Shown here: positions 11,904 through 54,000 of the stretch, one piece after another
Numbering within the stretch: the stretch's first letter is position 1
How the letters are laid out: each line of letters begins with the position of its first letter
From: Phyllobates terribilis
Lineage: Eukaryota
Direction of reading: 5' to 3'
Length of the DNA stretch: 54,589 nt
NCBI RefSeq assembly: GCF_046119375.1
Contig: NW_027367824.1
Location: 1 to 54,589 of the forward strand
The notes under the pieces: generated by a model
The model's database searches: none
Told to the model about the DNA's origin: nothing
Seen by the model: only the letters and a program-made list of their open reading frames with translations
Position numbers and translations under genes: made by a program

Positions 11904-12139
11904 GGAAAACGAAGACCGAAATGCTACAGAGTTCCGCAATGGAATGAGGAAGACAGGGATGATGGTTGAATATGTCTGAATCAAGCAAACAGCAGCAGGA
12001 ATTCAGTAAGATGTTCTAAAATTAGACAACATCACGAATTTGGATCAAAAGGTACTACTAAAACACTCCCTAATTTATCAAATCAGACTAAAATTTTCTT
12101 TATTATTTCTATTAGAACATTATAAAAATATAAAAGGTA

Positions 12140-20399: not shown

Positions 20400-21482
20400 A
20401 TGGCAAGTATTACAAAGAGAGAATTTGAGATTCTTGACTTATCGGGTCATAAATACCTCGAGTGGAAGGTAGATTCCCTCACTCACCTTAAGGCAAATGT
20501 TCTTGAACAAACAATTGATGAAAAGGGCAACACAACGACACAAGAGAAAGAAAAGGCTATCGTATTCCTCCGCCACCATATACATGAAAGCCTTAAAACT
20601 GAGTATTTATTTGTTGATGATCCCAAAGTATTGTGGGAAAATCTAAATGAACGTTATGGCCATATAAAGGAGGTCCTCCTCCCACAAGCACAACACGATT
20701 GGAGCAACTTAAGGTTCCAGGACTATAAGTCCATATCAGATTATAATAGTGCTCTATTCAGGATCACATCCCAACTTAAGTTATATGGTCAAGAAGTAAC
20801 TGAGTCACAAATGTTGGAGAGGACGTTCTCCGCCATGCATGCATCTAGTGTTGTGTTACAACAACAATATAGGGAGAGGAAATTCACAAAATACTCAGAC
20901 TTGTTGAAAGTATTATTGGTTGCTGAAAAGAACAGTGAAATCTTAATGAGAAATTATAATATGAGGCCCACTGGCCCCATAACGCTTCCTGAAGCAAACG
21001 CTGTGGACAATGGATTTCCTGAAGGAAACGCCAATCAATATAAGGCACAACGTAATTATGGCCGCAGTCGTGGTCGCGGAAGCCGTGGAGGCTTTCGTGT
21101 CCGAGGAGGTCGTAGCAGCTATGGCAGAAGTCGTGGCCAAGGATACAACAAAGGTCATGGCAACAACCATGGCTACAAAGTCACAAAGGGGGATGGAAAG
21201 CAAAAGGTCCAGACGGGTCAAGCAGGACCCTCCCAAAAATCCACTTGTTATATATGTGGCATGACTGGTCATTGGTCAAGACTATGTCGTACACCCCCAC
21301 ACTTAGTGAGGTTGTACCAAACTGAGAAGGGAAAAGATAAGGTACCTGAGACAAATTACACTGAGAATGAGAATGTTGAAAATATTAACATGCCAAATAT
21401 GGATACCCCTGTATTCTTTAACCAAGAAGGAGGTACCAATTTGTCTCTGAACCTTGACGATGATAATGACTACGTCTTTTAA
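20400..21482 (+). CDS. Gag ORF of the Bianca-like element (360 aa, intact frame, CCHC knuckle)
   Basis: MASITKREFEILDLSGHKYLEW, a UBN2-like region LRFQDYKSISDYNSALFRI, an RG-rich tract, and CYICGMTGHWSRLC. Confidence 0.88.
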   Translation: MASITKREFEILDLSGHKYLEWKVDSLTHLKANVLEQTIDEKGNTTTQEKEKAIVFLRHHIHESLKTEYLFVDDPKVLWENLNERYGHIKEVLLPQAQHDWSNLRFQDYKSISDYNSALFRITSQLKLYGQEVTESQMLERTFSAMHASSVVLQQQYRERKFTKYSDLLKVLLVAEKNSEILMRNYNMRPTGPITLPEANAVDNGFPEGNANQYKAQRNYGRSRGRGSRGGFRVRGGRSSYGRSRGQGYNKGHGNNHGYKVTKGDGKQKVQTGQAGPSQKSTCYICGMTGHWSRLCRTPPHLVRLYQTEKGKDKVPETNYTENENVENINMPNMDTPVFFNQEGGTNLSLNLDDDNDYVF

Positions 21483-24400: not shown

Positions 24401-26514
24401 TCAATATGGATAAGGCACATCCTTTGAGTTCACCCATGGATGTTCGATCCCTTAGTGTTGATAAGGGCCAGTTTCACCCTCAAGAAGAGGACGAAGAAGT
24501 CCTCGGTCCTGAAGTACCATACATTATTCAATTGGTGCTTTAATGTATTTAACTAACAATACAAGACCAGATATTGTTTTTGCGATGAATCTTTTATCCA
24601 GGTTTAGTTCCACTCCTACAAGGAGGCATTGGAATGGGATCAAACACATATTTCGCTATTTAGGGGGACACATGATCTGGGGTTGTTCTACCGTGCTCAA
24701 GAGATGTCACGGTGGTCGGATATGCAGATGCAGGATATTTATCTGAATAAAGCCAAGTCACAAAATGGTTATGTGTTCCCCCCACATATGGAGTCACAAC
24801 CATATCATGGAGATCAAATTAGCAAACGGTGACTACAACATCATCAAATCAAGCAGAGTTGATTGCACTTTACGAGGCAGGAAGAGGATATGTGGCATTA
24901 CGAGCAATGATCACATTCATCCAGAAGGAATGTGGAGTGAGGCCTATCACCAACGGGCCAACGATGATCTATGAAGACAACTCAGCATGCGTTGCTCAGA
25001 TGAAGAAAGGGTATATCAAAGGAGATCGTACAAAACACATTTTACCCAAATTCTTCTCTACTCATGAATTGGACGAAGCTGGAGAAATCAAAGTTCAACA
25101 GATCTGGACGAATGATAATTTGGCTGATATGTTTACAAAGTCATTAACTCCCAAGAAGTTTGCAGAACTAGTATCAAGGATTGGAATGTGCAGACTCAGA
25201 GACACCCATTGATCTCATGGGGAGCTTCATGCGCGCTGCACTCTTTTTCCCTTCGATCAAGTTTTTTTTTCTCCCACAAGGTTTTTGCCTGACGAGGTTT
25301 TTAATGAGGCAGCATCAAGGCATATAACGGGATTCACAGTTGTACTATTTTTCCTTCGATCATGTTTTTATCCCACCGGGGTTTTCCTAACAAGGTTTTA
25401 ACGAGGCAACACTCATCCATATCCTGCAATAGTTCAAAGGTGAATATTCAAGGGGGGTGTTATGAATTGAAATTTCTACAAATGTAAAAATTATATCAAC
25501 CACAACTTTATCTAGATGTTTGATGAACAATTGCATGATTGTAGTAGATATGAAATTTGTAGTAGATATTCTAATGGTGAATTATTCACCTACGAATTTT
25601 ATGGGATTAACTTAAATTTTGTCTCCCCTATTTTGCCTATAAATAAAGGCATTTTCTAGTGTAAATGGCACACCAAAATAAGAGTAAGAATACTCATCTA
25701 AATTTTCTTGATCTCTCCCTTTCTCTTTCACAATTTAAAGTTATTTTAGTTGTCCTTTAAGTAAGACTAAGACATCTTGTCTTACTAATCTAAGTCTTAG
25801 ATTAAGACACTTTGTCTTACTCGTTTATAACAGATACATTAATCTCATTCATCGACTCACCAATATTTTTGTTATCACCAAAAAAGGAAAAGGCTAGAGT
25901 GGATTTTGAATAAGTGAAAGAAGTTTTTCATATTTCTATGATGTGTATTGGATTGAATTCGACCCTATTCAAAATCGGATTACTCCGAAATTCCGGATTA
26001 AACTATGCTTAATCTGAAATCCGATATAAAATGTCAGATCGGGTTCAGTACAAAAATCCGAAATTAAAAAATGCATCTACATAAATAGCTAATCTCTTTA
26101 CAATCCTTTCTTTTAAAGATTATTAAATTGAACCAAATAGATTAGAAAGACACTTTGATTAGTCTTTTATACCGATCTATTTTAGTAATACATTAATGGA
26201 GATAACCCCGATTTGATATGAACCTCATTTTTCAAAAGGACGGTGGTAAAGAAGTGGTGGGCCTGGTGGCCGACTAGCCGGTGGAAGAGGGTGTGATGTG
26301 GTGTTGGAATGGAGGATGCGAAACTCAAAAGTTGGAACTCGGAGTGGTGGCCAGTGGGGAGAGACACCTTCGGTGATGCACTTGTGCTTGGTAGGAGACC
26401 CCGTTGCACTGGCCGTCGTTGAAGGGACTAGGGAACGCTGGAGTACGAGATTCGATTTTGAAAGGATAGGTGGAGGTCTCGGGGAAGGAGGCGAGATTGA
26501 AAAATGGAAATTAG

Positions 26515-32500: not shown

Positions 32501-33807
32501 TGGCCACCCCTGTACACACTGCAAAGAAGGAGGTTTGGAGGTGGCTAAAATGGAATTGAGGGTTTTGGGCCGGTTTTTGGCTTTTATACGCCAAAAGCCG
32601 CGCCTCGTCACGAGCGGCCCGTAATCGCTTCGTTATGAGGCGTTGCATATGCGCTCGTGATGAGCCAGTAAATGAGGATTTGTGACGAGTGCGCCATTAA
32701 CCGCGGTGTGACGAGCGCATCTACAGTGACTCCTGATGAACCGGTCCTTGACCATTCGTGACGAGCGAGGGTGCGACAGTTAGTGAAAAGTGTTATGTGA
32801 CGTAGAAAGGGGATTATAACCCTAATTCCCCTTTAGTGATCACCTATCATAGAAAGGGAACTATGTGCCACAATGGAGAAACGAAGGTGGTCGGCGTTCT
32901 TCACCACAGGTAGGCTCCGATTCTACAAGTTAAGACATATTAGCACATTGTTAGAGTTCTTTAGTTTTGATGTTGACAAATCGCTTACTAACTTGTTTAC
33001 CTGAGTGTTACTTGCAGTTACTATTTTAGGGAAGCTTCCCTATTGGGAAACTTTCCTTAACAGGTAAGAGACTTCAAAAAGGGAATCAATCAACCATATT
33101 ATTAAGGAAGGAAGTATGGGCCGAGAGATATGAGACAATAATGGATTAAACATTTAAGATTCAGATTAATCAAATAAAGAAGCAAATCTTAAGGTGTTAA
33201 GATTTGATTTTGAAGAAGATCTTGAAAGAGATATTATGGAGGTTTTTCTCAAGGAAGAAAAAGAAGAAAATCAAGAAAAGATTAAGAAGTCGTCCAGTTA
33301 GGAAAAGAATCATGAGAGATGATTTTATTTGAAGATTTGGTCAAACAATATGGCAATAAATATATTGCATATCTTGCTCAAGGAAGATACGCCGCTTTTG
33401 GCCTATGAAAGGATTCGTCTTCTACAATGAAGAGAAGGGTTGAACGACTGAAGAAAAACACAATATACTGGGTTAAGAGAGCCACACATCTGTAGGGTTG
33501 AGTTTGGGTACGAGTGAGAAGAGAGATTTGATAACTCTGAGTTCTCTATTTGTAACAAACAAGAAATCCAATAAGAAGAGTGTGTGATTTTCAAATCCTT
33601 CTAGTGAAGAACTAGAAGGTAGCGGTTTCACTCAATACTAGTTTTGTATTGAGGTTTCCACTCTAAATATTGTGTCAAACTTTTACGAATTTTTTATTCC
33701 GCTGCGTGACGCTCAGGGAAGTGACAGTCGCTTCCCTCGTCGCTTACGTCACAACGATCCAACAATTGGTATCAGAGCGAGGTTCTTGTTGTGACTGAAT
33801 TCAAGAA

Positions 33808-36800
33808 ATGGCCTCAAGCAACTCAATCAATGATTCCTTCTAGAAGCCTCCAACACTCAAGAATGGAGAGTATGACTGGTGGGTGGAACAATTTGAATCC
33901 CACATTTGTGTTCTTCACGGACAATTATGGAAGATATTTGAGTTCGGAGATGAAAAGATCTGGGTCGATGCAACTACAAAGTTGGCTATAAAGGAGAGGA
34001 AATATTACTCAAACGCAGACTACAAGACTCTCGAACTCAACATGAGGGCAGAGAAACTCCTACACATGGCTCTTGGTCCTTCGGATCTAAGGAAGGTTCT
34101 TCGCTGCAAAACGGCGAATGACATATGGGAGGCACTCAAGAGAATGTACGGAGGAAACGATGATGTGAAGAAAAATAGAATTCTTGCTGTACAAAAGGAT
34201 TATGACAACGTGGCACAATATAAAGGTGAATCCTTAGAAGACTTTCACTCCAGATTCCAAACCTATGTTGGACAACTAGAATTTCTTGGAGAAGTTCTTC
34301 CTGATTGGAAAATCACACATCAGTTCCTTCAGGCCTTGAATTCCAAGTGGGACTCAATAGCTCTTGCCCTACAAGCTCAGAATGACATCAAGTCAATCAC
34401 ACTGGAAGACTTAGTAGCCCGACTACAAAGCAACACTGGAGTTCAACTAAGGAAAACTGCTCGACGGGAAAGAGAAAAGAGCCAAAACATAGCTCTCAAG
34501 ATTGAGAAAGCTTTCGACCGGGCTCAAATGGAAGGAGGAATTGAAGACGAAGATGAGGACATTGCTCTGATTACAAGAACTTTCAAGAAAGTATTGAAAG
34601 GGAACAAAGATATTCAACGCTCATCGGAGGGAAGTAACAAAAATCTCAAGGAAGTGATGTGCTATCACTGCTAAAAGAAAGGACACTTTGCAAGAAACTG
34701 CTTCAAAAAGAAGGATGGAGAACCTCCAGTGCAAACAAGGAAAACCGCAATGGTGGCAACCTGGGGGGACTCTGACTCTAACGAGGACGCCTCCCTCGTT
34801 TCTGGTGAACTATACTTAATGGAAAACGAGGATGCTTCTGATGATGAGGTAACTGAATCTATTGTCATCTCTAAATTAAAAGGAAAAACTAAAGAGCATC
34901 TAATAGGCATTATTAGAAAACTTGAAACTAAAATTGCTAATTTGAATGAATCCCTCGAGGAAAGGGAGGAAATTGTCTCAAATCTGCTCGAAGACAATCA
35001 TGGTTGGGCAGAAAGGGTGAAAAACCTGGAGAAAGTTTCCTCTGTGACTTCGGAGAAATGAAAAATATGTCCTATACTAGAAGAAAGAATTGATTCTATC
35101 ACTAAAAACACAAAGGGCCTAGAAATTGATAGGGAAGTGACTAGGAAATTGATAGGGAAGTGACTAGGAAAGTGATAGAGGGATTCATTCAAAATTGCTA
35201 ATTTGAATGAATCCCTCGAGGAAAGGGAGGAAACTGTCTCAAATCTGCTCGAAGACAATCATGGTTGGGCAGAAAAGGTGAAAAACCTGGAGAAAATTTC
35301 CTCCGCGACTTCGGAGAAATGCAAAATCTGTCCTATACTAGAAGAAAGAATTGATTCTATCACTAAAAACATAAAGGGCCTAGAAATTGATAGGGAAGTG
35401 ACTAGGAAAGTGATAGAGGACCTTAAGAAAGATGAAGAAGAAAATAAAGAGGCATGGAAAAATGAATTCACTATAGAAAAGGCAAATAAATTAAAAGAGG
35501 ATTTTGCTAAGAGATTCACTCCAAAATGTGGCATAGGATACGTTGAGACTGCCACAGGTAAGGGTAAGGTAAGTGACTCGAATACGGAGGTTAAACCTTC
35601 AATTCCAAAGGATCAGTGTAATAGCCCCAACACTGGGTGCAATCACTGTATTTCTAAGGATAAATGAGAATCCCCCTTACCTGAACTGAATAACCGGTTT
35701 AATGGTCAAAAGGCTTATGCAATGTGGATTAAGCAATTCGAGAATGAAAAACCGAATCATATAGACTTTGAGGCTAGGAAAAATAATAAGACCATTTGGC
35801 CTAGTCAAAGTAGATATGTTAATCTAAAATGTCATAGGATATGTTGGCACTGTGGGAAAGATGGACATTATAAACATGAATGCTACTCTAGGATTAGAAT
35901 GCTACAAAAGGTTTACAAGTCTTCTAATGAACGTCAAAATATTCCCGAGGCTAAGTAAAAAACAAATAAACAAGTAAAGGTGATTAAGCATGAGAATGCT
36001 TCCCCTAAACCCGATAAGCCTAAGCTTATTTGGGTTCGTAAGAACTAATGCTTTATATGCAGGGGAAAGTGAGGAAGAGTTCCTGGTACATAGATAGTGC
36101 ATGCTCAGGGCATATGAAGGGAAACAGGAACTGGTTCAACTCACTTAAGGAAGACTCTGGAGCCTCAATCACATTCGGAAACGAGAGCAAAGGAGAGGTA
36201 ATTGGTACAGGACAAGTAGGTATTTCTGAACATGTCACTGTGGAGAAAGTGAACCTGGTAAACAACCTAAAATTCGATCTTCTAAGCGTAGCTAAGCTAT
36301 GCCTTGGAGGAAAAAATGAGGTTATCTTCACTATTAAGGACTGCATTGTGAGAAATGTTGAAACTGGAAAGATTGTGTTGAAAGGACTATGTGATGGGAA
36401 AGTCTACAGGGTTGATCCCTCATTTATCCTGACAGGGAAGTGTGTCTCGCTTCCCTGAAGGAAGATTCTGACATGTGGCACAAAAGATTCGGACACACAA
36501 GTCTCCGACTCTTTTCAAAACTTCACTCAAAAGAGTTTGTGGAAGGATTACCCAAAGTTGAAGCTCAAAATGGTCAGGTATGTAGTGCATGCATAAGAGG
36601 TAAGAAATCAAGGATATCCTTTAAATCCAAAATGGAGGTAAGTACTCTCAAACCTCTTGATCTTATTCATATGGATCTGTGTGGACCCATGCGCACCTTG
36701 ATCCGTGGTGGAAACAAATATGTGTTTGTTATTGTTGATGACTTCTCCAGGTATACGTTGACTATCTTTCTTTCAACAAAGGAAGATGTATTCTCAGATT

Positions 36801-39307
36801 TTGTCGTGTGGAAGAAGAAAACTGAGCTCAAACTAGTAAGCAAGTTGAAGTCCATCCACACTGATCACGGAACTGAATTCGACAACTCCTCTTTTCTCTC
36901 ATTATGCAGGGATTGTGGAATCGATCACAACTTCTCAGCTCCTAGAACTCCACAAGAGAATGGAGTGTTTGAACGAAAGAACATAACCTTGGAAGGAATG
37001 ACAAGAACGCTCTTAATCGCCAGTGGCCTTCCTAGCACCTTCTGGGATGAGGCTTTACATGCTTCTTGTTACATCCTGAATAGAGCCTTTCTAAGGCCCA
37101 TGTTGGAGAAAACATCCTACGAGCTACTAAAATGGAGGAAATCAAATATAAGTCACTTACGTGTGTTTGGTTGCAGGTGTTTTGTTCTTATAAATGGAAA
37201 GGAAAGTTTGGGAAAGTTTGATGCTCGAAGTGATCCGGGAATCTTTGTGGGGTACTCCTCACATAGTGAAGCATACAAGGTCTTCAATCAATGAAAAAGG
37301 AAGGTAGAGGAAAGTTTTCATGTTCGATTTGATGAACTAAAAATGGTGGGAACTGAGCTTGTTGATCTAAATGCACCTCCACTATCTGATGATGAAGACT
37401 TTCAAGTACTAGAGTTTTCTGAAGAACGCACAAGTGAGGAGGAGATTCCTCTTTCCCCACTCATAGATACTCCGAGCAATGATCCACAAAGTAACGATTC
37501 CCCGTCTCAAGAGAATCAGATGGATGAGGAGGAACCAATGGATCACACTTCTCAAAATGTGACCAGCAATCCGGTTGTCTATGATGCTACATCTCTAGCA
37601 CCATGCTCTCGCACTCCTTCTTCTTACCTCAGAGACTACGAATGCCCTACCATTCAACACCCCCAGGTAGTCGATCAGGTGGTCGACCCGGTAATCGACC
37701 AGGTAAGCGACCTGGCAGTCGACCATGTAAGTGATTCTGACCCTAACTCTTGTGCGTTCACTTCTTTCCTCTCCCTCGTAGAACCAAAGACTATAAGTGA
37801 GGCACTCAAGGATCCATAGTGGGTAAAAGCAATGCAAGAGGAACTCCATCAGTTTGAACGAAACAAGGTTTGGAGATTTGTTCCTAGGCCAGAGAACAGA
37901 ACCATCATTGGCACAAAATGGATCTTTAGGAACAAACTCGATGACAAGGGACAAGTCACAAGAAACAAGGCAAGACTTGTTGTTAAAGGGTACAATCAAC
38001 AGGAGGGAATCGACTATGATGAGACATTTTCTCCCGTGGCTAGGTTAGAAGCTATTAGACTCTTGATTGCATATTCTGCTCACCATGGTTTTATATTGCA
38101 GCAAATGGATGTCAAAACAACATTCTTGAATGGCGTACTGAAAGAGGAAGTATATGTAAGTCAAACACCAGGGTTTGAGGATCACTCTCATCCAAACTAT
38201 GTCTTCGCGTTAGATAAGGCGTTGTACGGTCTTAAACAAGCACCTCATGCCTGGTATGAGAGGCTATCACAGTTCCTTCTCTCACATGGATATGTGCGTG
38301 GGGAAATAGACAAAACTCTCTTCCTTCTCAAAGAAGGGAAACATACCTTGGTTGTTCAAGTTTATGTCGATGACATCATTTTTGGCTCCACAAATGAGGT
38401 GTTAGTTACTAAGTTCACTAGACTCATGGAAAGTGAGTTCGAAATGAGTATAGTGGGAGAACTAAAGTTCTTTTTAGGACTGCAAATAGTTCAATCCAAG
38501 GAAGGGACCAAGGTACATCAACAAAAGTACATCCATGAGTGCATCAAAAAGTTTGGTATGAATGATGCTAAACCTTTTTCTACCCCTATGTCACCAAATA
38601 ATTCACTAGGAAAGGACGATAAGGAGAAGGATGCTGACCAAACTTTATATAGAGGAATGATAGGATCTCTATTATATGTAACGGCTAGTAGGCCATATGT
38701 TATGTATTGTGTGTGTTTATGTGCTAGATTTCACGCAAATCCAAAGGAAACACACGCCAAGGCCATGAAGAGGATTCTCATATATCTCAAGGGAATAATT
38801 GATCTATGTCTATGGTATCCCCGTGGTGGTGATCTATCACTGGTTTGGTATACAGATGCGGACTTTGCTGGGAATAAGGTGGATAGAAAGTCTACTTCTG
38901 GAATGGCTCAATTCCTTGGTCCATGTCTTGTCTCTTAGGGATCAAAGAAACAAACCTCAGTTGGACTCTCCACAGCAGAAGCTAAATATGTACCTGCAGC
39001 CGCGTGTTGTTCACAACTTCTGTGGCTTAAACAACATCTAAGAGATTTTGGCATATTTCTTGACTCAGTTCCTATACTTTGTGATAACACTAGTGCTATA
39101 AATATATCTAAGAATCCTGTGCAACACTCTAGGACAAAGCACATCGAGATAAGGCATCACTTTCTTTGTGATTGTGTCAAGAAAGGAATGGTCTCAATGA
39201 ACTTCTGTAGCACAAAGAATCAAATTGCTGACATCTTCACTAAGGCACTCAACAGGGAACCCTTTGAGAAGCTCCGTATGGAACTTGGTATGATTTCCCT
39301 TGACTAA
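33808..39307 (+). pseudogene. Disrupted gag-pol polyprotein of the SIRE-like element
   Basis: Gag UBN2-like region, two zinc knuckles, WYIDSACSGHM protease, WHKRFGH / LDLIHMDLCGP integrase, [14 protein letters not shown] and [23 protein letters not shown] RNase H. Confidence 0.9.
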
Positions 39308-42045
39308 ATGTTATTCTCTTACGCTTCTCCCGATGATTGGTTGAAATCATGTGTGTATTGTTATTATATGTTGCATATCATAATCCTTGTAGGAGTAGCA
39401 TTTCTAGATTATACTTATTTTCCTTCCATGCGTCCTACCCCTAGTCACTTCCCTGGTTAATTACGCTTGGTTTAAGAAATTTTGACTCGCAAATCACATA
39501 GGTTTTTTTGTAAGCCCAAAAGATTCCTCACGATGATTTTTTAACCCGACATTATAAGCCCAAATGACGGAGGAAATCTACAGTGTCCCAAAGCCTCGTA
39601 TAGCATGTATAATCCTATGAGCACTTTTTTCGTATATTAACTGGATTCGTAATTCTATGCTTAATAAACACATGAACATATATGTTAAAATTTTTTTTTG
39701 TGTAATGGTCTCCTTGTGAAACCATCTTTGGTACGTGTCCCTACTCATTACACAACTTCGCTATCAAACACATACATGAGGTAAGCGACAAGGTAATCGA
39801 ATCTGCTGAAGTCTTGCACAAGAAGGAAAATCTTGCGATAGTTAGGGGAAATCAATTTGCAGGGTGTATATTTGCCTACGTGGACGTGATGTATGATATG
39901 ACATATCTATGGCGGGCCTGTTCAAAACCCAACAACAAATTCAACACAAAACTCTCTAGTAAGAGGAGAAGAGATCAGGGAAGGAAGAAGGAAATTGACT
40001 CTAAGGAATCTTCAAAAGGGTACATCTGCTGACCCAGTAGGTGAAGGTGGATCAAAGCACAGGAAACTTCAAGCCAATGTAAATGGCTTGATGAATCATC
40101 TGGAGAAGCACCAAATAGAAATAGAGAAGCACAAGTCTGATGTCGAGTCGAAAGCCGTGTAACTTGCTCTCCTCTAATGTGTTTGATCCCCAAACACCAC
40201 CCCTTGCTCATCTATCCATACTTCTCTTGACTCTTTTTGGTTAAAACTTTTGTGATCTGTTTGTCTTTTGCTCTAAAACTGTCGTAGTATACTTTGGATT
40301 ACATTAGGGGTTGTGCTTGCGTGCGCAAGACAACTTTGTATGGTCATATGATTTCCTTGCCTATCTTGGTGTATTTTTGCGCTTCGTATAATGAATTTAC
40401 TGGCTTTTTGATGATGCCAAAAGGGGGAAAGTTTAAGGGTGTCATATTTTGAGGGGGAAGTTGCTTACTAGGTTACTTACTCGAGTCATCTTAGGGGGAA
40501 TTGTCAAGTGTCTATATGTGGTCCTTCAATGCTTTATACTTGACTTTGATCTTAAATGTTTAAAGTGTTTGTCACCATCAAAAAGGGGGAATTTGTTAGA
40601 GTTCCTTAGTTTTGATGTTGACAAGTCGCTTACTAACTCGTTTACCTGCTTGTTACTTGCAGTTACTATTTTAGGGAAGCTTCCCTATTGGGAAACTTTC
40701 CTTAACAGGTAAGCGACTTCAAAACGGGAATCAATCAACCATATTATTAAGGAAGGAAGTATGGGCCGAGAGATATGAGACAATAATGGATTAAACATTT
40801 AAGATTCAGATTAATCAAATAAAGAAGCAAATCTTAAGGTGTTAAGATTTGATTTTGAAGAAGATCTTGAAAGAGATATTACGGAGGTTTTTCTCAAGGA
40901 AGAAAAAGAAGAAAATCAAGAAAAGATTAAGAAGTCGTCCAGTTAGGAAAAGAATCATGAGAGATGATTTTATTTGAAGATTTGGTCAAACAATATGGCA
41001 ATAAATATATTACATATCTTGCTCAAGGAAGATACGCCGCTTTTGGCCTATAAAAGGATTCGTCTTCTACAATGAAGAGGAGGACTGAACGACTGAAGAA
41101 AAACACAATATACTGGGTTAAGAGAGCCACACATCTGTAAGGGTTGAGTTTGGGTACGAGTGAGAAGAGAGATTTGATAATTCCGAGTTCTCTATTTGTA
41201 ACAAACAAGAAATCCAATAAGAAAAGTGTGTGAGTTTCAAATCCTTCTAGTGAAGAACTAGAAGGTAATGGTTTTACTCAATACTTGTTTTGTATTGAGG
41301 TTTACACTATAAATATTGTGCCAAACTTTTAAGAACTTTTTATTCCGCTGCCACTACTAAATATTGGGTCTATTGTAATGCCTGAAAAGTATTACAACAA
41401 GGCCAATAACCATTACAATAGGTCTATGGTAATGGATGAAAAACAGTTACAATAGAGGCCGTTGCCCTAGGTTTTAGGTAATAGATTTTTGTTCTATGGT
41501 AACAGTTCCATAAATTCAACAACAACCATTACAAAAGGCTTTAATCCATTACATTATACATGCATTATATTAGGTATAAAACCATTACATCTGACATAAG
41601 CATTACACTAGATACTAAGGCATTACCTTAATTCTAACCGTTGCCTTTTGCATATACCCATTACCTTAATTATCTAATGTAATACATCTTATTAAAGAAA
41701 AATGTGTTACACTAGACAATTTAGGTGTTACATAAAAGCATACCAATTTCACACAATTTAATTGTATATATATATTAATTTATAAACCAATACTTCAAAC
41801 CAAATTTAGAACTACTAATTTATAAACCATTATATAATCTAGTATGATATTACAAAAGATCATAGTACTTTATTAGAAGTATATAATATAGTATTTCACC
41901 ATGTCCAAAATGTCAAACTCTTGGCTATGTTGATTGTCAAATTCCTAACATAAACACCATATATATACTCAAAACTATCTAGATTAATATACCCAAAAAG
42001 TTGCCAAGTCTTGTAAGTGATTGTAGTTGAGTAGTTAACTCCCAT

Positions 42046-42150
42046 CTTCAACATTGTCTACATCTTCAATATCTTCTCCATCTTCACATCTTCCACATCT
42101 TCTAAATCTTCTACATCTTCCACATCTTCTAGATCTTCCACGTTTTCATC
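42046..42150 (-). repeat. 9-bp GAAGATGTG-type repeat forming an acidic (E/D/V) exon-like block
   Basis: The minus strand reads DENVEDLEDVEDVEDLEDVEDV after an acceptor TTGCAAATAG at 42151-42160. Confidence 0.6.
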
Positions 42151-42490
42151 CTATTTGCAAAACAAAACTTAGAACATATAGATAAAAAAATCAAGGATAT
42201 TGATTCACATCAAACTCAATAGCAGTCAAACACTCATATTTTTCAATAGTTGTTTTCCTATGAAATCAAACACAATCACATTTTAAATCACAAGATAACC
42301 ATATCAACCAAATTGATGGACAGTAGCCAAACACAATCACAATTTAAGTCAACACAATCACATTTTAAGTCAAGGATATTTAGCAAAACCACAACAACAC
42401 AACAATATGCAAACTTCAGCCAAACCACAACAGGAAATTAGTGATTCAAACTAATAGAGAATAAAATATGGTTTGTATCAGAAACAGTAC

Positions 42491-43635
42491 TTGTTGTCAT
42501 CAGAGTCATCAATATCAGCATCTGAACCAACTGATGTAATAGTGACATCAGGCTTAAGTTGAGCAGACTGAAGTAATGGGGGCATTACAACATTCATATA
42601 AGGGATAAAATCTTGTCCAAGGAACTTGCAAAGTCTATACCAAGCCTGGCAATTAGCAAATCATGTCATATCACATATATTGTCTCATTCATAGTTTATT
42701 TAAAAGTTAACAACATCTTAGAGGCTAAAAACATACTTGCAACATATAGCTAGTAGTTGGATCATCTGCTTCCAATTGTGATTCTTGCCACGACATGAGG
42801 ACTTCCATGACCTAAGCATCATTATAGCAATTTATCAGAACACTCGTTCAACAAATTTAGGGGAATTTGATATTCATATCAGGATATTAAGTATACGTAT
42901 GAGATGTCAATAACAAATGAGCTTAGCAGACAGTCACCAAGAACTCAAAAATTAAAAGAAAAAACATGAAAAAGGGCTAAAAACCAAACTTGCTTTGCAT
43001 CATCTCTAAATTTCTCTTTTCCAACAGCCATCCCAACTAAACTAATGCACTCCATAGATTTCACACGCAGCATGCGGTAAGACTTGTCATTAGCATTTAT
43101 TAAAATGGTTTTCAGGTACGGCATTATAGCATCATAGTACTTCTGGAAAAGCTCCTGGAAAGATACACATAACAACAGAGAATTAGTTTCTGAGAAGAGA
43201 GAGAATACTCAAATTTACTAAGATGTCTAACAAAACCTGTGATGAATCAGCAACTGATGCCAAAGCCGTCAATGCACCTTCTTGTACCATTTGCTTTCCA
43301 TTCTGTAATCCATTTGCAAATCAAAAGATAAGCCACATAATCCAACAGAATAAGCTCGTCTAAGTTGTTATAAAGCTCATCTAGGTACATCAAATTTGTT
43401 CAATAGTTATAATATGTGTAATCTAAAAGGGTTTTTTTCTTCTAAATACTACATACATATTCATAGATAGGGATTAGAGAGAAAGACATAGCAACGAAAG
43501 TTCCTTATGAGGTGGATGCAAGAATATTTACGCGTTGTACCATAATATATTTATGATTGTGGAAAGAAAATTTACCTGCAGAAGCACAAGTAATTTGCTA
43601 ACTATGCCATCCAAGTATGGAGTTAATAATTCGAT
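42491..43635 (-). pseudogene. Captured importin-5 (karyopherin beta-3) fragment. Exons ~43635-43576 (partial), 43302-43237, 43154-42990, 42811-42737, 42645-42491
   Basis: Exons translate to PYLDGIVSKLLVLLQ / NGKQMVQEGALTALASVADSSQ / ELFQKYYDAIMPYLKTIL...KSMECISLVGMAVGKEKFRDDAKQ / VMEVLMS...DDPTTSYMLQ / AWYRLCKFLGQDFIPYMNVVMPPLLQSAQLKPDV. GT-AG introns are retained. Confidence 0.88.
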
Positions 43636-44563
43636 GATCACCAGAAGCACAAGTAATTTTTGAACTAAACTTTGAGAATATCTGGAGGAAGGCAGCCAAG
43701 TCGACGCCATATATAATTCGATGATCAGCAGTCACATTTACCTACACCAGATTTAAAGTTTAGTTCAAAAATGTCATCAAATTCACAAACACACAACTCG
43801 AAAATAGAATAGCAGAACACTCTTAAGATAATAAAAAAAAGTCAAGCTGATTGAATCTAGATGGATATTACGGCATCCTGCTGAAAAGAAAACCTTTCGG
43901 TCTCAAAACATGGAAAGATTTCTACACTATAAATGTTGTAACATCTCCTTAGTTTCTTGGTCACCCAAAAAAGTGACCATATCTTAACACCCATGAGTAT
44001 GTCCATCTCGGATCTCCTTAACCATTTTAGTAAACAGCAGAGGTGGAATGAGTGGGAAACATCAATGAAAAGGTGTAGAAGAAAATCTTATATAAATTAT
44101 TAGCACATGTCAAACTGAGATAAATAGACAGTCAATCATCAAGGATAGTTGTAACTAAGAGGGATGGGATAGCTTGAAAATGATATGTAATTCATGTGAC
44201 TAGCAAAAGGTGAATGGAAGATTATGTATAAGACAATTAGAGCTACTGTAAGAAGAAGCTACTATTTTAGACAACTGAAAAACAAAAAGAGAGGCCCAGA
44301 CGGAATATAAGCAGCTAAATAATAATGCAATTCTAGAATAATTTTTAAAGCATGGATGGATAGTTAGTATAGTAGCAATATTGTAGATGTTATGAATGAA
44401 TAGAACTTACTAGCATTTTGTTCTTAACAAAAAAGAACCCATCTTTATCAGCAGCAACAGTAGGTTTTGATGCTCCAACAGCCATTATAGCTCCCTGATC
44501 ACGACATTCCACTATTAGCATAGCTTAAAGAAGATACAACTAGTATTGAAAGTTGGGACTTAC

Positions 44564-45854
44564 ATCTAAATATTGTTCCAATCTCTCAACCAGCTCATGT
44601 GGTAGAGGCTCTGGCAAATTAACAGTGTTCTTGTAGAATTTGTCCAACCACAGCTCTGTGCTCGTCTTTTTTCTCTTTCCTTTCACCGGTTCACCAAGAG
44701 GAGTCTTCAGGTACTCACTTACAAAACCTTGGACAATCTGTATTCAACAAGTGATTTTTAAGAAAGTAAATAATGTCATTACAATGAAGCGTACTAGAGA
44801 TGGATACCTATGATGTATCATGGATTTTCCGGAGTGAAAAATCAACGCGGGCATAGATTGTGTTCCTCTGGAAATTTTGCTGGATTAATTATAAGAACAT
44901 TTATGATGTAGTAATACAATATGAGCTTACTAGTGCAACATCTCTTAGAATTTGACTAACATGAGAAACATTAGCAAATGGGCCGAAAGGATGGCAACCA
45001 GTTGCCCAAAGCCAATTTAAAATTGGTCTTTCATGAATATGAGAAGCTTTCTCATATGGAGCACTCAATCCCCTACAATTGATGCAAGCCCTGCTAATAT
45101 ATGTCGTTGTGCTTCAGATGGAACATCATTCATCTTTTCTGTTTCTGATATATAACTGTCAAGGAAGAATTAGAATTAAAATATGATTAGAGACTTCTCA
45201 TACTTTGTATGATTTGAAGAAAAATTCCATGCTAGCTTACCTCAAAGGTATCTTATCATTTTTATGCTCCAGTACAATGACAACATCATTATTGGTCCAG
45301 ACAAGGCTTTCATCTTCCATCATAAGATTTGGATCAACATCAGCAAGTGGTAACACAAATCTGCAAGAGAAGAACTAAACATTTTTTACAATTCAAATTT
45401 GATTATATCAAATAGTCCAACATTCACTAAAAGATAAACTAGATAACAATTTTGAAAATTTAACAAGGTAAAAGTGCCTTACACAGGAACTACTCTTGTT
45501 CCATAAGTCCGGTACAAATCTCCCTGTTTGTATATTGCTCTCTTTTTCTTTTCCTTGCTATTCTTGGGTCTGTAAGTTTCCCATATTGGCTTATGCTTGA
45601 GTATAGAATCACTTGATATAGATTCCTCAATCCAGTTTTTCACAACAAGGCAGAACCACCATGAGTATCATCAACCCAATTCTACACTTTTATCTAGATT
45701 TTTGAGTCTGAGACTAATCAAATTACAAATTGATGGTCCAACAATAAACTTACCTGGCGGAGGAAAAAATTGTCTGAAAGAGAGGGATCAACTACCTCCA
45801 GTATACCAGCAGCAAGCATATCAGCTGAGCGCTCCATCTCCTGTTTCATGCATT
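44564..45854 (-). pseudogene. Captured fragment of an At5g58100-like uncharacterised plant protein. Exons 45854-45754, 45637-45483, 45360-45241, 45155-44931, 44867-44808, 44737-44564
   Basis: Exons read EMERSADMLAAG / GDLYRTYGTRVVPV / FVLPLADVDPNLMMEDESLVW / AQRHILAGLAS...GCHPFGPF / RNTIYARVD / SEYLKTPLGEPVK...PHELVERLEQYLD. Defects: one frameshift (~45070), a TAG at 44808-44810, and a lost AG acceptor at 45638-45639. The family name is from recall. Confidence 0.75.
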
Positions 45855-46494
45855 CTGAAGGTAATTTGTTTTTGCAATATATCCACTAAAGTGACATCCA
45901 ATTTTCAGACATTCAACTCATCCTGTTCCAAACATAGTTAGCAAATCAGCCATAAATAGCTCCTATTTTAAAATTGTCAAAAATAGTACGCTCATATTTC
46001 CATTACCCTTAAGAAGATAAAACAGATAGCGAGTCTGCGGCATTTTAAAAATGGATAGAAGTCCATCCCCTTTTATCTATATTTAGGGCCTGAAAGCACA
46101 ATGTGCCAGCAGCCACTCAGAAATATCTATTAGAAGAAAATTACAGTAAACTCTCCATAATAATGGCTAGATAACAAAGTAATTATTTTCTCAAATACTC
46201 CAAAATAGTGAACACCAGAGTTCAGGAATGTTATCATACACAAAGTAATTATTTTCTCAAATACTCCAAAATAGTAGATTATTCACAAAAAAGTCCACAA
46301 GTATACTGCAAATAAACTCACAAAAAAGTCCCAAATACTCCAAAATAGTAGATTATTCAAAAAAAAAAAGTATACTGCAAATCCATAAATCAAAAACAGA
46401 ATGAAACAACAAAACCCAATCCTGAGATAGTTGTCTTCAGTGGCAGCATTCTCATATTCTGATCTGGCCTAAATTAAAACCCACAAAGGGTTCA

Positions 46495-46650
46495 ATGTGC
46501 CAACAAGTTCTAGAGATTAGTCGTTCTAACAAGTTCAGAAGTGCATTAGAACTATTTAAGTCCATGGTAACCCTTAAACTAAAACCTAACTTACATTCCT
46601 GCAACTCACTTCTATCTTGTATTTTAAGGAATGACATGCTTGACGATGCT
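46495..46650 (+). pseudogene. Captured PPR gene fragment (about one motif; resembles At3g29290/EMB2076 from recall)
   Basis: ISRSNKFRSALELFKSMVTLKLKPNLHSCNSLLSCILRN, then similarity is lost abruptly. Confidence 0.65.
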
Positions 46651-48083
46651 AATAGCTCATCTCAAAGTCATATACAGATGAAGACGCTAACTATTCAAAC
46701 TGAAGCATTTCACCGATTAAATAATAGAATGAAGCACAACATTGTTCCAACATACAAGAAGCACGGGGAGAATGACCTTAATATATAATGTTGCAGCAAA
46801 GGGACATGAATGGAAGAGCATTGGGCACTTGTTCTACACTAGGCTAACTGTAAAGGACATTAAACAAGTTCTAATGAAATTTGAATGATTTATCAACAAG
46901 CAACTGGCTAGTCATTTGCGCTACTAACACAAACTACTTTAGATGACATAAAAGTGAATTAAAATGTGTAGATCCTAGAAAAACCTATGCATTCTTTACA
47001 TTCTTAAATTGGAAACAGAGTTCATCCTACCTGAGACCAGCCTTTTCATTTGAGTGCAAAATGCAAACAGAACATAATTAACTCACTGAATCTGCAGGCA
47101 AAAGCAATCACTAGTAGTCCTGCGGCAATATCCTTGAAACACAAAACACACAATCAAATAGATCCGCTCGAATGAAGACCAAGACAATACACAACGTCCA
47201 CCTACAACCAATGTTAAGCATAGTTTCAATCAGACATATCAATAGGTGTGACCATGAAATACACAACTTGACAATGAATATGACAGAAACAAGGAGATAG
47301 AGGTTACTGCAGAACTCATAAATTCATGGACTCTGAGTCGTTCAATCAAATCACCAATCCTCATTCAGCAGTTTGCCAGGCACCTCGCAGTTTGGGTTAT
47401 TATCACCCCTGCGACTGATATTGGTCGTCTCTATGCTGGTGAGTCATGCTGGAAAAATCAACAGAGAGATCAGAGTAGAGAGAGACGACCTTAGAGATAT
47501 TGGCGTTGATCTCGGGACTTAGGGCGACATTCGTGGCGAGCTTCTCCGGAATGGGAATTAGGGCTTTGCTGGAAAAACTCAATCGATAGAGAATGATGGG
47601 AATTAGTTGCGCTGAATGGGAATTAGGGGTTTTGGGGAATTAGGAGTTTCCCGCATCACGCCTCCTTGTCCTGCCTCCCGTCCTTTTTGATAGCCCTTTC
47701 TTTCTTTTCATTTGTGGAAATCAACCCTGCCTTTTCTTTATCTCCCACCCGCGCTCACATAATTTTTTTACTTTGTCAAAATTTAACTGTAACCCTTGCT
47801 TATTTTTACCGTAACTCTGGCTCTATATTTTATCAATTTTACAACCATTGCCTTTGTTTACACTGTTGTTACCTTATGATAATCTCTTTAACCTCAACTG
47901 TTACACTAGACTTCCATACTAATTAAAATATGAGTCATTACACTAGACTATATATTGTAATAGCAAAAAAAAACATAACAAAATTTCCATTACCTGAAGC
48001 TTGTTATTTAGTAGTGTGCGTGACGCTCAGGGAAGTGACAGTCGCTTCCCTCGTCACTTACGTCACAACGATTCAACACACAT

Positions 48084-51000
48084 AAACAAATTCAGTTATT
48101 GTTAATCGAGTAGGTTGACTTTGACGTAGAAGTCCAATCCCATTTCTCATGTTCTATTTATGTCATTTCAGTATATAGCCATTCAAATATCATATATACT
48201 TCTCTAAGCTAATTTATCAACTATGAAAAAGTGTAGTTGACCTTCAATTGAAAATTGAGTGTCATCAGTGGTTGGCTTCTCCAATTCACATAGATTTTTG
48301 TGAAACTATGTAAAGATTCGAACTTATGAGACGTTTGTGCATAAGGGTTTATATATATGCATACTCATCCATCTCCTAGTATAATGGCGAGATATTGTTT
48401 ATGTCGAATACAGGTTGATTCGGACTCTGAAGATGCGAAGAACTGTCACTCTTTAGTTTAAGGTAAGATGATTCTTACTTCTTTTTACATATTTTTATCG
48501 TTATATGATCATAAGTATATTCTTATTTCAATCATATTGTCTAAGTACATGCATTGGATGCCTCGGCATGACTGAGATTGCTAGTGATTGATGATTAATA
48601 GTTAGTGGATGATTGTTGATTGATCGGTTATGAGGATAGCGCTTCTCTTCATAATTGGGACAATGCGATGATAGCCTTACCGACCATGTATAGGGTGTGA
48701 TCTTATGTTGGTTTAAGACCAAAGCAAATAGTGAAAGTCCCATCTTGAATATGTGATTCCGGATAATGATTGAACGGTTATAAGGTTGGCATTGCTCCTC
48801 ATAACTGGGCTAGTGTGATGATAGTCTCACCGACCACGTATAGGGTGTTGCCTTACGTTGGTGTAAGGTCAAAACCGATGGTGAAAGTCCCATCTATTAG
48901 TCTATTGATGGATAGTGGGGGTTATCAAGAGCTTTAAGTGATGTTAGAATTGATTTAAACCTATTATGTGATAAAATATAGTGATATTTGATGAGTAATA
49001 GTATATATAGGTGTTTGATGATTCTTGCTAGTCTTTCATTAGACTAACCCAATCTTGGATTGGTTGGATGGTGATTCAAATCCACTAGTCGTCAGGTCTT
49101 TGCATGTTCAAAGTAGCAGGGAGGTGTCCGATCACACTTCAACTTTTTCAGTTACAGGGTTTTTGTTTCGTTTAACACTTTTGAATATTGTATATAATTC
49201 AAGTCTATTTTCGTAGTGACTTTCTTATCATGTAGTGTGATATGAATTTTGGAGAAACTATTACTATTACATTTTGGAAAACATCATTAAAAGCATGGTA
49301 GATCTTATTGGTCTGCGATATTGTGACACCTAAGATTCGGGATGTTATAGAAATTGGTATCAGAGCCAGGTTGTTTTCAAAAATGTTTTAAAATGGTTTT
49401 GACAAAAATGTGATCAGGACTCCTGATGCTACCTGCAAGTAAGGTTTATTTTAGTTAAGCGTTACTTATCATAGAGTACTAATAAGAAATTATGTTCGGA
49501 ATGGTTCCGAATGTTGGGCGAGGTCGAGGGCGGGGTCGAGCATGTGGGCATGGGAGAGAATGAGTCCCCCAAGCTCAACCTCAAGAGGGAGATGCCGGTA
49601 TCCAAGTGGCTAATGATTTTGTAGGGAGACAAGAGATTCCTATTGGATCACCTTCAGTGCTGTCCTAGGGGCACTGACCCAGGAACATTTGTTGTATTAC
49701 AACAACTAGAGACTTAAGTTGTACAAGCAACAATGGATCAAGTGACTGTGCCACAACCGATGCCAACTCTCAGCCAGATTATGCGGGCCAACAACATCAA
49801 GAGCCTTCATTGTTGCACGAGGGTTTAACAGGTACATGGAAGTTGTGTCAAGAATAAAGTCTCCTACTTTTGATGGTTCTGTTGAACCTACTACTGTGAT
49901 GTTTTGGTTGAATTGAATTAATAGGTTGTTTAAGGGTGTGAGGTGTCCAGCTAGTGAGAAGGTTGCAATTGCTACCTACTATATTATTGATGATGCTAGT
50001 GATTGGTGGGACACTACTCATCCTAATAATCATGAGGCTTCTTGGGATGAGTTCAAGACGAAGTTAGAGGACATATACTTTCTTGAAGCCTTGATGGATG
50101 CCAAATTGCATGAGTTCCAGTACCCGGAAAATGAAGGATTAAAGTTACACCAACTAGATGCAAAGTTTAATAAGTTATTGAAGTATGCTACTTCTGTTAT
50201 CAAGGATGAGAAAGACAAGATCAAGAACTTTCATAGATGGTTGTATCATGAGATAAAACCTTTGATGTCGATACACAGTTGTACAACACTGAGCAGTATA
50301 TTGATGAGTGCTTGGCTATGAAGGCTTCTATTGATGAATCTAATCAGATTATTGATTCTCACGTCGGTAAGAAGAAAAAGACTCATACTGTAGCTGGAGA
50401 AGGTGGGTCTCACAACAATGGTTTTAAGAGGCCATTCTCTAATTTGGGAAGTGCTGAAAATAATGGCAACAACAAGCCAACTCAGAGTGGTGGTTCACAG
50501 ATGACAGTCGGTTTCCAATCATCAGGAGCCCAACCAGGGTGTCTAGAGTTGCACCTCGTTGCTTTCATTGTGGTGATCCTCAACACAAGAAGACCGACTG
50601 TACAAGCCACATCACACTTTCTATAAATGTGGGAAAGTTGGATACCTTTTTTTTGTTGGAAACAAGGGATAATTCCGGAGCAGTCCCAAGCATCTTTGCC
50701 CGCTTATCGCGCACCCCAGAATCAAAATCAACCTACACTAGTTCAATATCAGCAGAACAACAATGGGAACAAGGGTAAAAAACAAGTTGGTGGGCATCGA
50801 ACACCACAATTTTATGATACGAGGAAAGTTGATGAGCATGATGCGCCGAACCACATGTACCATCCTTATTCAATTTGAGCCAGTCTATTTTTTATTTGAT
50901 TCTGGTGCTACTCATTCATTTATTGTTGAGAGTTGTGTTGATAGGATTGGACTAGTATGTGATATAGAGTGTGAACCTTTTGTTGTTGGGTTGTCTAATG

Positions 51001-54000
51001 TTGATAAACTAGTTGGGACTAGGGTAATTAAAAACTTTCCTACCCTTATAAGGGGTATGGTTGGGTGACCTAATTGATATCAGAATGTTGCATTACAATA
51101 TCATTCTGGGAAGAGATTGGCTTTCTCGTCATGGTTTTACTCTTGATTTTACGAGTAAAACAGTAACAATGATGACAGATGAAGGCTCGCTGCATGTTTT
51201 TTAGGGTCATGATCCCAATGACTCGAGCAGAATCGTTACTGAGGTGTCAGAAGTGAGATTATTAAGATAAGGTTGTGCTAGCTATGTGTGTTATGATTTG
51301 GAAGAGAAGAAATGCAGGGTGCAGTTAGATGATATTTGTATTGTGCGGGACAAACCAGATTTATTTTCAGAGAAATTGCCAGGGCTAGCACCGAGACAAG
51401 ATGTTGATTTTAGTATTGGGTTAGAACCCAAAATTGTCCCGATATCTCGAGCTCCATACATAATGGCACCAGTGGAGATGTTGGAATTGAAGAAGCAGTT
51501 CGAAGAACTTTCTGAACTGGATTTTCTAGACCTAGCATATCATCGTGGGGAGCACCAATTTTGTTTGTCAAGAAAAAGGATGGTTCATTTCGAATCTGTA
51601 TTGACTATAGGGACTTGAACAAGGTGACAATCAAGAACAAATATGCACTCCCTCGTATTGACGATCTGATAAACCAATTGCAAGGAGCTACAGTCTTTTT
51701 GAAGATTGATTTGAGATCTAGATATCGTTAACTAAGGATACGAGAAGAGGATATTCACAAGACTCTCTTCAGGACACGTTATGTCCATTATGAATTTTCG
51801 GTGATGCCATTCGGGTTGACTAATGCTCCAGATGTCTTTATGGACTTAATGAATCAATGCTCAAGGAGTATTTAGACCGCTTTGTAGTGGTCTTCATTGA
51901 TGATATATTGGTCTATTAACGAAGTAAGGAGGAGCATGAGATGCACCTCAAGCCAGTACTTGATGTGTTGAGGGAACAACTACTATATGCAAAGTTATCA
52001 AAATGTGACTTTTGGTTACCTGAAGTGGCATTTCTAGGCCATGTAATCTCCAAGGAAGGAGCGATGGTAGATTTGCAAAAGAGAGAGGCTTTTGCAGGTT
52101 GGAGACATCCTCATAATGTTAAGGAGGTTAGAAGTATCCTTGGGCTTATAGGTTATTATAGACGGTTTGTGGAAGGGTTCTCTAAAATTGTCCAACCACT
52201 AACTAGTTTATTATGCTGGAAAAAGAAGTTCGAATGGGACACGAGATGTCAGAAGTGTTTTAAAGAGCTTAAAAGATGACTAACTAATGCACAGACAGTA
52301 GCCTTACCACAGGGAACTGAAGGATTTGATGTATATAGTGATGCTTCTAAGAAAGGATTGGGTTGTGTTATAATGAAGAATGGAAAGGTTATTTCATATG
52401 TCTCATGTCAGCTCAAACATTATGAGGTTAATTATCCCATGCATGATCTTGAGCTTGTAGATGTAGTCTTTGCGCTTAAGATCTGGCGACACTATCTATA
52501 TGGGGTAAGATGCCCAATCTTTAACAGATCACAAGAGCTTGGAGTATATTTTTACTCAAAGAGAGTTGAACATGAGACAAAGAAGATATTTGGAGTTGAT
52601 TAAATATTATTATATCGATATTCTCTACCACCCGGGAAAGGCTAACGTGGTAGAAGATGCTTTGAGTAGGAAGTCAAGTCCAGAGAATTTGATCGATTGT
52701 CTAATGACTCAGCCAAAATTATGACAAGATATGTTGAGGAATAACATAGAAGTTTTCTTTAAGAAGGATCATATTCAATTAAATGTGATGGAAATCCATT
52801 CAACACTAGTAGAGATGATCAAGGAGAAGCAACCTTATGACCCAGTCTTGAGTAGGATATGCATGGACATTACTCAAGGAAAGGCCCCTGGATTCTTGAT
52901 TCGTGATGATGGGATATTGATATTTCAGATGCGGTTTTGTGTGCCAGTTGATAGGGAGCTCAGAGACATAATCCTTATAGAAGTTCACTCTTTGGAATTT
53001 TCCGTACATCCATGAGCCAGTAAGATGTACAAGGATTTGAGGAGTAGTTATTAGTGGAGTAACATGAAGCAAGAAGTTGCAGAGTATGTGTCTAGGTGTT
53101 TAACGTGTTAGCATGTTAAGATTGAACACCAAAGGCCAGCTGGTGAATTACAACCACTTCCTATTCCTGAATGGAAGTGGGAGGATATTGTTATGGACTT
53201 TGTTGTCCGTCTTCCAAGATCAAAGAAGGGAAATGATACTATATGGGTCGTCGTTGATTGCTTAACAAAATTTGCGCAATTTTTAGCACTTAATTCGGAA
53301 CTTGATTCGGACTTTGGAGATTCGAAGAATTGTTACTCTTTAGTTTAAGGCAAGATGATTCTTGCTTATTCTTATATAATTTTATTGTTATATGGTTCTA
53401 AGTATATCATTATTTCAATTATGTTGTCTAAGTACAATCGTTGAATGCCTCAGCATGACTGAGGTTGGTAGTGATTGATGATTAATAGTTAGTGAATGAT
53501 TGTTGATTGATCGGTTACGAGGATGACGTTGCTCCTCATAACTGGGTCAGTGTGATGATAGCCTTACCGACCACATATAGGGTGTGGCCTTACGTTGGTT
53601 TAAGGCCAAATCAGATGGTGAGAGTCCCATATTGAGTATGTGATTCTAGATATTGACTGGACGGTTATGAGGATGGCACTGCTCCTCATAACTGGGCTAG
53701 TGTGATGATTGTGTCACCGACCACTTATAGGGTGTGGCCTTACATTGGTTTAAGGCCAAAACCGATGATGAAAGTCCCATCTATTAGTATATTGATGGAT
53801 AATGGGGTTATCAAGAGATTTAAGTGATGTTAGAATTGATATAAACTTATTATGTGATAAAATCTAATGATATTTGATGAGTAAGAGTATAAATAGGCTT
53901 TTGATTATTCTTTCTAGTCTTTCATTAGACTAACTCAATCTTAGATTTGTCCTTGGTTAGTTGGTGATTCAAATCCACTAGTCACCAGGTCTTCACAGGT

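Follow-up and report, generated by a model that had tools for sequence, protein, structure and literature searches.

A probable Pack-CACTA element with fragments of several unrelated plant genes, inserted in the long terminal repeat of a copia retrotransposon

Introduction

How do fragments of several unrelated genes, with their introns, come to lie side by side between the two ends of a single DNA transposon? This question is raised by a 6.7-kb CACTA element at positions 41352-48016 of contig NW_027367824.1 (NCBI RefSeq assembly GCF_046119375.1, Phyllobates terribilis), of which positions 1 to 54,589 of the forward strand, the whole stretch analyzed here, are referred to as the window. The original prediction, made from the sequence alone, described a CACTA element with perfect terminal inverted repeats (TIRs) and a TGC target-site duplication (TSD), no visible transposase, and a cargo taken from at least three unrelated host genes. 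Here, we have examined the ends, the insertion site, the cargo and the joints of this element. It is very probably a non-autonomous Pack-type CACTA element of the En/Spm superfamily carrying a mosaic of genic DNA, because it combines CACTA-type TIRs, a 3-bp TSD and the lack of a transposase with host gene fragments between its ends. One joint between two captured fragments was found to consist of filler DNA copied from nearby sequence, and we discuss what this may say about the way in which such mosaics are assembled.

Ends of the element and its empty site

The element begins and ends with the inverted motif 5'-CACTA...TAGTG-3'. Its left TIR (CACTACTAAATA, 41352-41363, plus strand) and its right TIR (the inverted copy of the same sequence, 48005-48016, minus strand) agree perfectly over 12 bp and, with up to one mismatch allowed, they are the only two matches to this sequence in the whole 54.6-kb window, lying in opposite orientations at 41352 and 48016. 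One copy of TGC is present on either side (41349-41351 and 48017-48019); with a slash for the border of the element, the left boundary reads ...TTATTCCGC TGC/CACTACTAAATATTGGG and the right boundary ...CTTGTTATTTAGTAGTG/TGC GTGACGCTC. The window contains no N.

The insertion site lies within a complete copia retrotransposon (32949-48078, plus strand), one long terminal repeat (LTR) of which preserves the empty site. The 5' LTR (32949-33764, plus strand) is uninterrupted, has a single TGC at 33703-33705, and reads ...TTATTCCGC TGC GTGACGCTC... unbroken through the insertion point, whereas the 3' LTR (40594-48078, plus strand) is split by the CACTA element into 40594-41351 and 48017-48078. In pairwise comparison, the left flank (40593-41351) corresponds to 32948-33705 with 96.4% identity, and the right flank (48017-48078) to 33703-33764 with 96.8%. 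These two matches overlap on the 5' LTR by exactly the 3 bp TGC, and the borders of the insertion and its TSD are therefore exact. The element transposed as a unit into the copia 3' LTR and duplicated TGC in doing so, which confirms the predicted ends and TSD and excludes that the exon blocks are parts of resident genes extending past the TIRs, since the sequences outside the TIRs are two halves of one LTR.

The host retrotransposon has the expected parts of a copia element: a 5-bp TSD (CACAT), a primer-binding site of the tRNA-Met type (TGGTATCAGAGC), a polypurine tract, and gag, integrase and reverse transcriptase domains between the LTRs, with open reading frames (ORFs) at 33883-38938. Since the CACTA element occupies its 3' LTR and the 5' LTR is unfilled, the CACTA insertion took place after the arrival of the copia element. 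The two LTRs (816/817 bp) differ by 28 mismatches and 1 gap (96.6% identity), corresponding to a Jukes-Cantor distance of K = 0.035; if rates between 1.3e-8 and 7e-9 per site per year are assumed, this divergence would place an upper bound of approximately 1.4-2.5 million years on the age of the CACTA insertion.

Inside the left end, nine CATTAC/GTAATG motifs are found within approximately 330 bp (41364-41680), compared with a background of 0.57 per kb over the window, and the right subterminal region (47780-48004) contains two copies of TTACACTAGACT and two of CATTAC. Both clusters resemble subterminal repeats of the putative TnpA-binding type, the right one being the weaker. The absence of a visible transposase was also borne out: translated segments from both strands, 66 of at least 40 amino acids (aa) and 81 of 26-39 aa (147 altogether), gave no match to any transposase family in Pfam, and no autonomous CACTA relative with the same ends is present inside the window. 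The 3-bp TSD, the 12-bp TIR and the CACTA start also do not agree with a Pack-MULE, for which a TSD of 9-10 bp and Mutator-type TIRs of about 100 bp or longer would be expected.

Gene fragments carried by the element

Within the element, at least five unrelated plant genes are represented by pieces, introns included, two more than the three named in the original prediction, which had overlooked the pieces of a pyruvate dehydrogenase E2 (PDH-E2) gene and an ELF4 gene. On the minus strand, four pieces from ELF4-like, DUF7906, plastid-type PDH-E2 and importin-5 genes follow one another head-to-tail, and a PPR-like piece lies on the plus strand. The exons were searched singly, and the identities given below rest on exon-by-exon matches. 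Introns and AG/GT splice borders are preserved in the captured pieces; capture therefore occurred at the DNA level, as had been proposed. Two fragment ends lie inside exons, one in the first importin-5 exon and the other in the last E2 exon. An exact look-up of ten ORFs of the element among 15 billion proteins returned no match.

The importin-5 piece comprises five exons on the minus strand, here called e1 to e5. Exon e1 (43576-43626) is cut inside the exon at 43626, e2 (NGKQMVQEGALTALASVADSSQ, 43237-43302) and e4 (VMEVLMSWQESQLEADDPTTSYMLQ, 42737-42811) both have AG and GT borders, e3 (42990-43154) matches human importin-5, and e5 (42496-42645) has a CAG acceptor at its start and is truncated near 42491-42496. 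The region of e3 (42948-43208, minus strand) corresponds to residues 521-590 of human importin-5 (E = 1e-15), and that of e5 (42481-42660, minus strand) to residues 605-654 (E = 3e-9). For e1, the sole match to this family in PDB is weak (residues 475-494 of yeast importin beta-3, E = 1) and is found at the colinear position; a longer e1 frame gave no significant PDB match, and neither did e2 and e4, which are too short. The colinear match to the HEAT-repeat body identifies importin-5/importin beta-3 (IPO5, Kap121) as the donor. All five predicted exons could thus be retained: e3 and e5 by significant matches, e1 by its colinear one, and e2 and e4 by position and splice sites.

The neighboring piece derives from a gene for PDH-E2 (dihydrolipoamide acetyltransferase) and consists of the penultimate exon (44411-44502, minus strand), which is entered inside the exon, and the last exon (43670-43741, minus strand), which is cut at 43670; the intron between them is 670 bp long and has GT and AG at its borders. 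The frame at 44393-44524 matches fragments named by their sources as pyruvate dehydrogenase E2, with E-values down to 1.8e-8 and 82-94% identity overall, and the frame at 43601-43741 matches positions 200-222 of the 232-position Pfam profile 2-oxoacid_dh (E = 0.0012). Searches with either exon in PDB, as well as in NCBIfam, gave nothing. The E2 loci of other plants match the penultimate exon only. Contigs P0188 and L001-L006, which encode the best E2 match, were considered as copies or parents of this piece and rejected, the match being confined to the exon at 83% identity, as in E2 genes of other plants. In addition, a 16-aa RING-H2-like patch (HSFHLCCLLKWLRRSE) was observed within 43860-44087 (minus strand) in the E2 intron; its match to zf-rbx1 (E = 4.5e-4) is below the cutoff, and it may be either a tiny sixth donor or a chance match.

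A further piece belongs to the DUF7906 (KNS3/KNSTH) family and occupies 44564-45849 on the minus strand. Its six exons (45849-45754, 45640-45481, 45360-45242, 45155-44926, 44867-44808 and 44737-44564) cover residues ~446-726 of 817-aa DUF7906 proteins in tblastn comparisons. A 67-aa frame at 44543-44743 has 55 protein matches among 1.84 billion proteins (best E = 5e-26), and full-length relatives, such as the 817-aa Ziziphus LOC107419002, bear the Pfam domain DUF7906. The copy shows several signs of degeneration: a frameshift of one base within a run of G in exon 4 (45069-45073, minus strand), where orthologues read ...LASAVGGLSAPYEKASH unbroken; an in-frame TAG as the last codon of exon 5 (44808-44810, minus strand), a position at which Glu is conserved in every orthologue; and no visible AG acceptor ahead of exon 2. 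In exon-by-exon comparison with seven orthologues, the copy is 72-76% identical to them, whereas they are 82-86% identical among themselves, i.e., it is approximately 10 percentage points further from them than they are from one another. Given the frameshift, the stop codon and this excess divergence, the copy is decaying.

The predicted second gene of six exons is therefore real, and the label of an At5g58100-like gene given to it is supported to the level of the DUF7906 family. The orthologues found are approximately 810 aa long, and At5g58100 itself, at about 945 aa, would be longer than these. At5g58100 (KNS3) has two homologues, At3g28720 and At4g16180, and the donor may be another KNS3 homologue rather than At5g58100 (PMC11629988).

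The two remaining pieces are short. The ELF4 piece (47424-47552, minus strand) is the C-terminal half of the domain, covering positions 39-81 of the 83 in the Pfam profile Elf4 with an E-value of 5e-14 (52.4 bits, compared with a cutoff of 27); a local 65-bp duplication is found upstream of it. The PPR-like piece (46495-46650, plus strand) had been predicted at this position and was recovered as about 1.5 repeats, its match to PPR_2 (E = 1.3e-6, 28.9 bits) being slightly under the Pfam cutoff of 30. A PPR gene at 270-1076 of the window was considered as the source of this piece and rejected, with 35% identity. The element also includes a 9-bp tandem repeat (CATCTTCNA, 42043-42156), which reads on the minus strand as an acidic repeat of E, D and V, and local repeats of 66-74 bp (46174-46382) with exact copies of 36, 28 and 18 nt.

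Parental genes and related copies in public runs

Further evidence was obtained from contigs of four public runs representing three organisms, in which contig depth is no measure of copy number. Contigs that match the importin-5 exon as far as 43626 run on into NFSESCTPEI, in frame with LTPYLDG, and contigs that match the last E2 exon down to 43670 run on into IIENPDTLIM. Presumably, these are the sequences that intact importin-5 and the C-terminus of intact E2 encode at these points. Longer copies of the parental type therefore exist, and both breakpoints lie within exons. The existence of intact parent genes elsewhere, on which the prediction depended, is supported to this extent, and the question is answered in part only. 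Moreover, a 3.8-kb contig (run X5) shows approximately 80% identity to e5 and e3, with 244 letters between them instead of the 353 in the element, and its joints (43157/43241 and 43305/43570) coincide with the borders of exon e2, as would be expected of a gene whose introns differ from those in the element.

The same runs provide information about related insertions. Loose contig ends before 48017 come from further copia LTR copies that lack the insertion. Behind 48016, loose ends with low agreement show the same right end joined to several unrelated flanks. Variant contigs with 95-99% identity over the cargo are present in all four runs, and contig depth in the terminal bin at the right end is 10-20 times that of the interior. 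These observations are suggestive of a multi-copy family; packFinder, for comparison, discards elements present as a single copy.

A contig of organism B (run X2) follows the DUF7906 block to 45955 and then continues with CAAAATTTCCATTAC..., which equals 15 nt of the right subterminal region (47979-47993). This contig may represent a shorter relative in which the PPR and ELF4 segments are missing.

The joint between the E2 and importin-5 fragments

The two fragments that end inside exons are joined by a 43-bp filler (43627-43669, minus strand) composed of three exact templated patches. On the minus strand, the first patch (43673-43656) is an inverted copy of 43772-43755 in the E2 intron, the second (43659-43642) a direct copy of 43596-43579 in importin-5 exon e1, and the third (43640-43626) a direct copy of 43727-43713 in the E2 exon. 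Together, the patches tile the filler and overrun both of its edges, they overlap by microhomologies of 3-4 nt, and all templates are located within 100 bp. None of 2000 shuffles equaled the observed matches, and the cluster is conspicuous among all short-range exact repeats of the element. Templated filler is known to be left behind by interrupted gap repair or by alternative end joining, and this joint shows what is probably the imprint of error-prone break repair on the cargo.

Previously, a neighboring-insertion model was put forward for Pack-CACTAs, in which genomic DNA is caught between two neighboring insertions (PMC6379663; reviewed in PMC13317346), and a 2026 review describes neighboring insertion plus aberrant excision as the only transduplication route for Pack-TYPE elements with TIRs (PMC13317346). 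Under this model, successive cargoes should be separated by transposon sequence, of which none is present here. It is conceivable, though doubtful, that serial template switching or polymerase-theta-type end joining, and not the neighboring-insertion/aberrant-excision route, united the two exon-broken host pieces. If this is true, and if the same joints recur in other copies or other Pack-CACTAs, cargoes from several donors would arise through error-prone repair of breaks within the element.

The history that we propose is as follows. The element would have been moved in trans by TnpA/TnpD-type proteins of an autonomous CACTA element recognizing the CACTA ends together with subterminal repeats of the CATTAC type. 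Its fragments would have been joined, or the DNA between them lost, through error-prone repair of double-strand breaks with serial template switching, in the form of interrupted gap repair or polymerase-theta-like end joining, and the cargo would be non-functional passenger DNA.

Points against this interpretation and alternative explanations

Several observations weigh against the interpretation of the locus given above. For exons e2 and e4 of importin-5, the assignment depends only on order and splice borders, and for the second E2 exon on position, splice sites and matches that are weak or indirect. CATTAC motifs are few at the right end, weaker there than at the left. Contig depth is the basis for copy number, no individual contig or long read was found to span the whole element, and none of the public runs holding the stretch is an RNA run. 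Lastly, the filler is compatible with a capture joint as well as with a later deletion between pieces that had already been captured.

Among the alternatives, the one that survives best, although we regard it as unlikely, is that the mosaic was built elsewhere, by a Helitron, a Pack-MULE or in a pseudogene-rich patch, and was then taken up en bloc by the CACTA element through neighboring insertion (Catoni et al.) or nesting. Strings of fragments on the same strand are typical of maize Helitrons. In the present element, four same-strand fragments are spaced by 40-60 bp, and these intervals are free of CACTA subterminal sequence, which is unlike the outcome of repeated rounds of neighboring insertion (PMC6379663) and thus favors such an origin. 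A Helitron would be expected to begin with 5'-TC, to end in a GC-rich hairpin plus CTRR, and to be inserted at AT. However, a crude scan of both strands of the element gave no Helitron 3' end (a GC-rich hairpin followed by CTRR-T), and neither an internal long TIR pair nor a second TSD is present inside it. In addition, the templates of the filler lie within the two joined fragments themselves, and this joint therefore needs no third vehicle.

It is very improbable that the element has been domesticated, either as a source of a chimeric spliced transcript or protein or as a source of small RNAs regulating the parent genes. Most of its exons have canonical splice sites and open frames, and in soybean the Tgm-Express1 fragments undergo splicing as exons (PMC1947982). 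On the other hand, the DUF7906 copy has a frameshift, an in-frame stop and no AG acceptor before exon 2, and its protein identity to the orthologues falls below that found among them. The element also resides in the LTR of a retrotransposon, in a region dense in transposable elements, and the stretch is held by no RNA run. There is no sign of a functional cargo.

Finally, a chance match of TIRs and TSD around resident gene remnants, with no transposon at all, is virtually excluded. In its favor, the TIR is only 12 bp long and, when the window was shuffled 100 times, at least two matches at one mismatch arose in 6 cases. The empty site already refutes it, the sister LTR being unbroken at the exact point with one TGC and the flanks being two halves of one LTR; in other runs, moreover, the right end is apparently multi-copy and is joined to unrelated flanks.

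Other features of the window

The window is dense in transposons. Direct repeats with 87% identity (48415-49011 and 53302-53897) flank a Ty3-type gag ORF (49926-50321) and are probably the LTRs of an older Ty3/gypsy element, the start of which is no more than approximately 340 bp away from the copia 3' LTR; the left repeat contains a 150-bp tandem duplication (48617-48895). A LINE-type ORF with RVT_1, zf-RVT and the RNase H-like RVT_3 is located at 16704-18794 (minus strand), and a second, broken copia gag/pre-integrase region at 20400-25212 (plus strand). The window also contains a single-ORF GT4 glycosyltransferase gene (10446-11984, minus strand) similar to AT3G10630, whose best relatives are 63-67% identical, with Caryophyllales leading (Ancistrocladus, Saponaria, Nepenthes and Gypsophila), a weak hint as to the lineage of this genome.

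Comparison with known systems

Non-autonomous En/Spm-related elements holding intron-containing pieces of host genes are known from the Tpn1 family of Japanese morning glory, whose TIRs are longer (28 bp) and have a different sequence. The multi-donor cargo had been predicted to be unusual and perhaps to define an undescribed family, an expectation that the literature does not support. Tgm-Express1 of soybean (Zabala and Vodkin) is a 5.7-kb CACTA element with fragments of five unrelated genes that are spliced as exons (PMC1947982), and maize Pack-CACTAs often hold several loci and have the most distinct loci among Pack-TYPE elements (Gisby and Catoni 2022, PMC8903248). Like Tgm-Express1, the present element has CACTA ends, lacks a transposase, is of comparable size (6.7 vs 5.7 kb) and carries multiple host fragments with exons and introns; it differs in terminal sequence, in donors and in location, Tgm-Express1 being in an intron of F3H and the present element in a copia LTR. 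It also shares CACTA TIRs, a 3-bp TSD, the lack of a transposase and a genic interior with the Pack-CACTAs of Arabidopsis and maize (PMC6379663, PMC8903248). It is therefore a further case of the gene-shuffling transposons known since 2005 and no new kind. Even so, it is a specimen of textbook quality: its exact empty site, an upper limit on its age set by the divergence of the LTRs, and its five donors can all be seen in a single window.

The difference from these systems lies in the joint. Unlike the neighboring-insertion capture described for Pack-CACTAs (Catoni et al. 2019, PMC6379663), the fragments abut here, and one joint consists of templated filler. Deletion junctions of MuDR and Ac/Ds with filler DNA have been ascribed to interrupted gap repair (cited in PMC6379663 as its references 36-37), and the internal-deletion derivatives so described resemble the present joint in their short microhomologies and in filler copied from nearby sequence. 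The deletions reported there join transposon DNA, whereas captured host exons are found on both sides here. Such fragment-to-fragment joints have seldom been described for Pack-CACTAs, and the base-level view provided by this element bears on how Pack-CACTAs acquire and merge host DNA.

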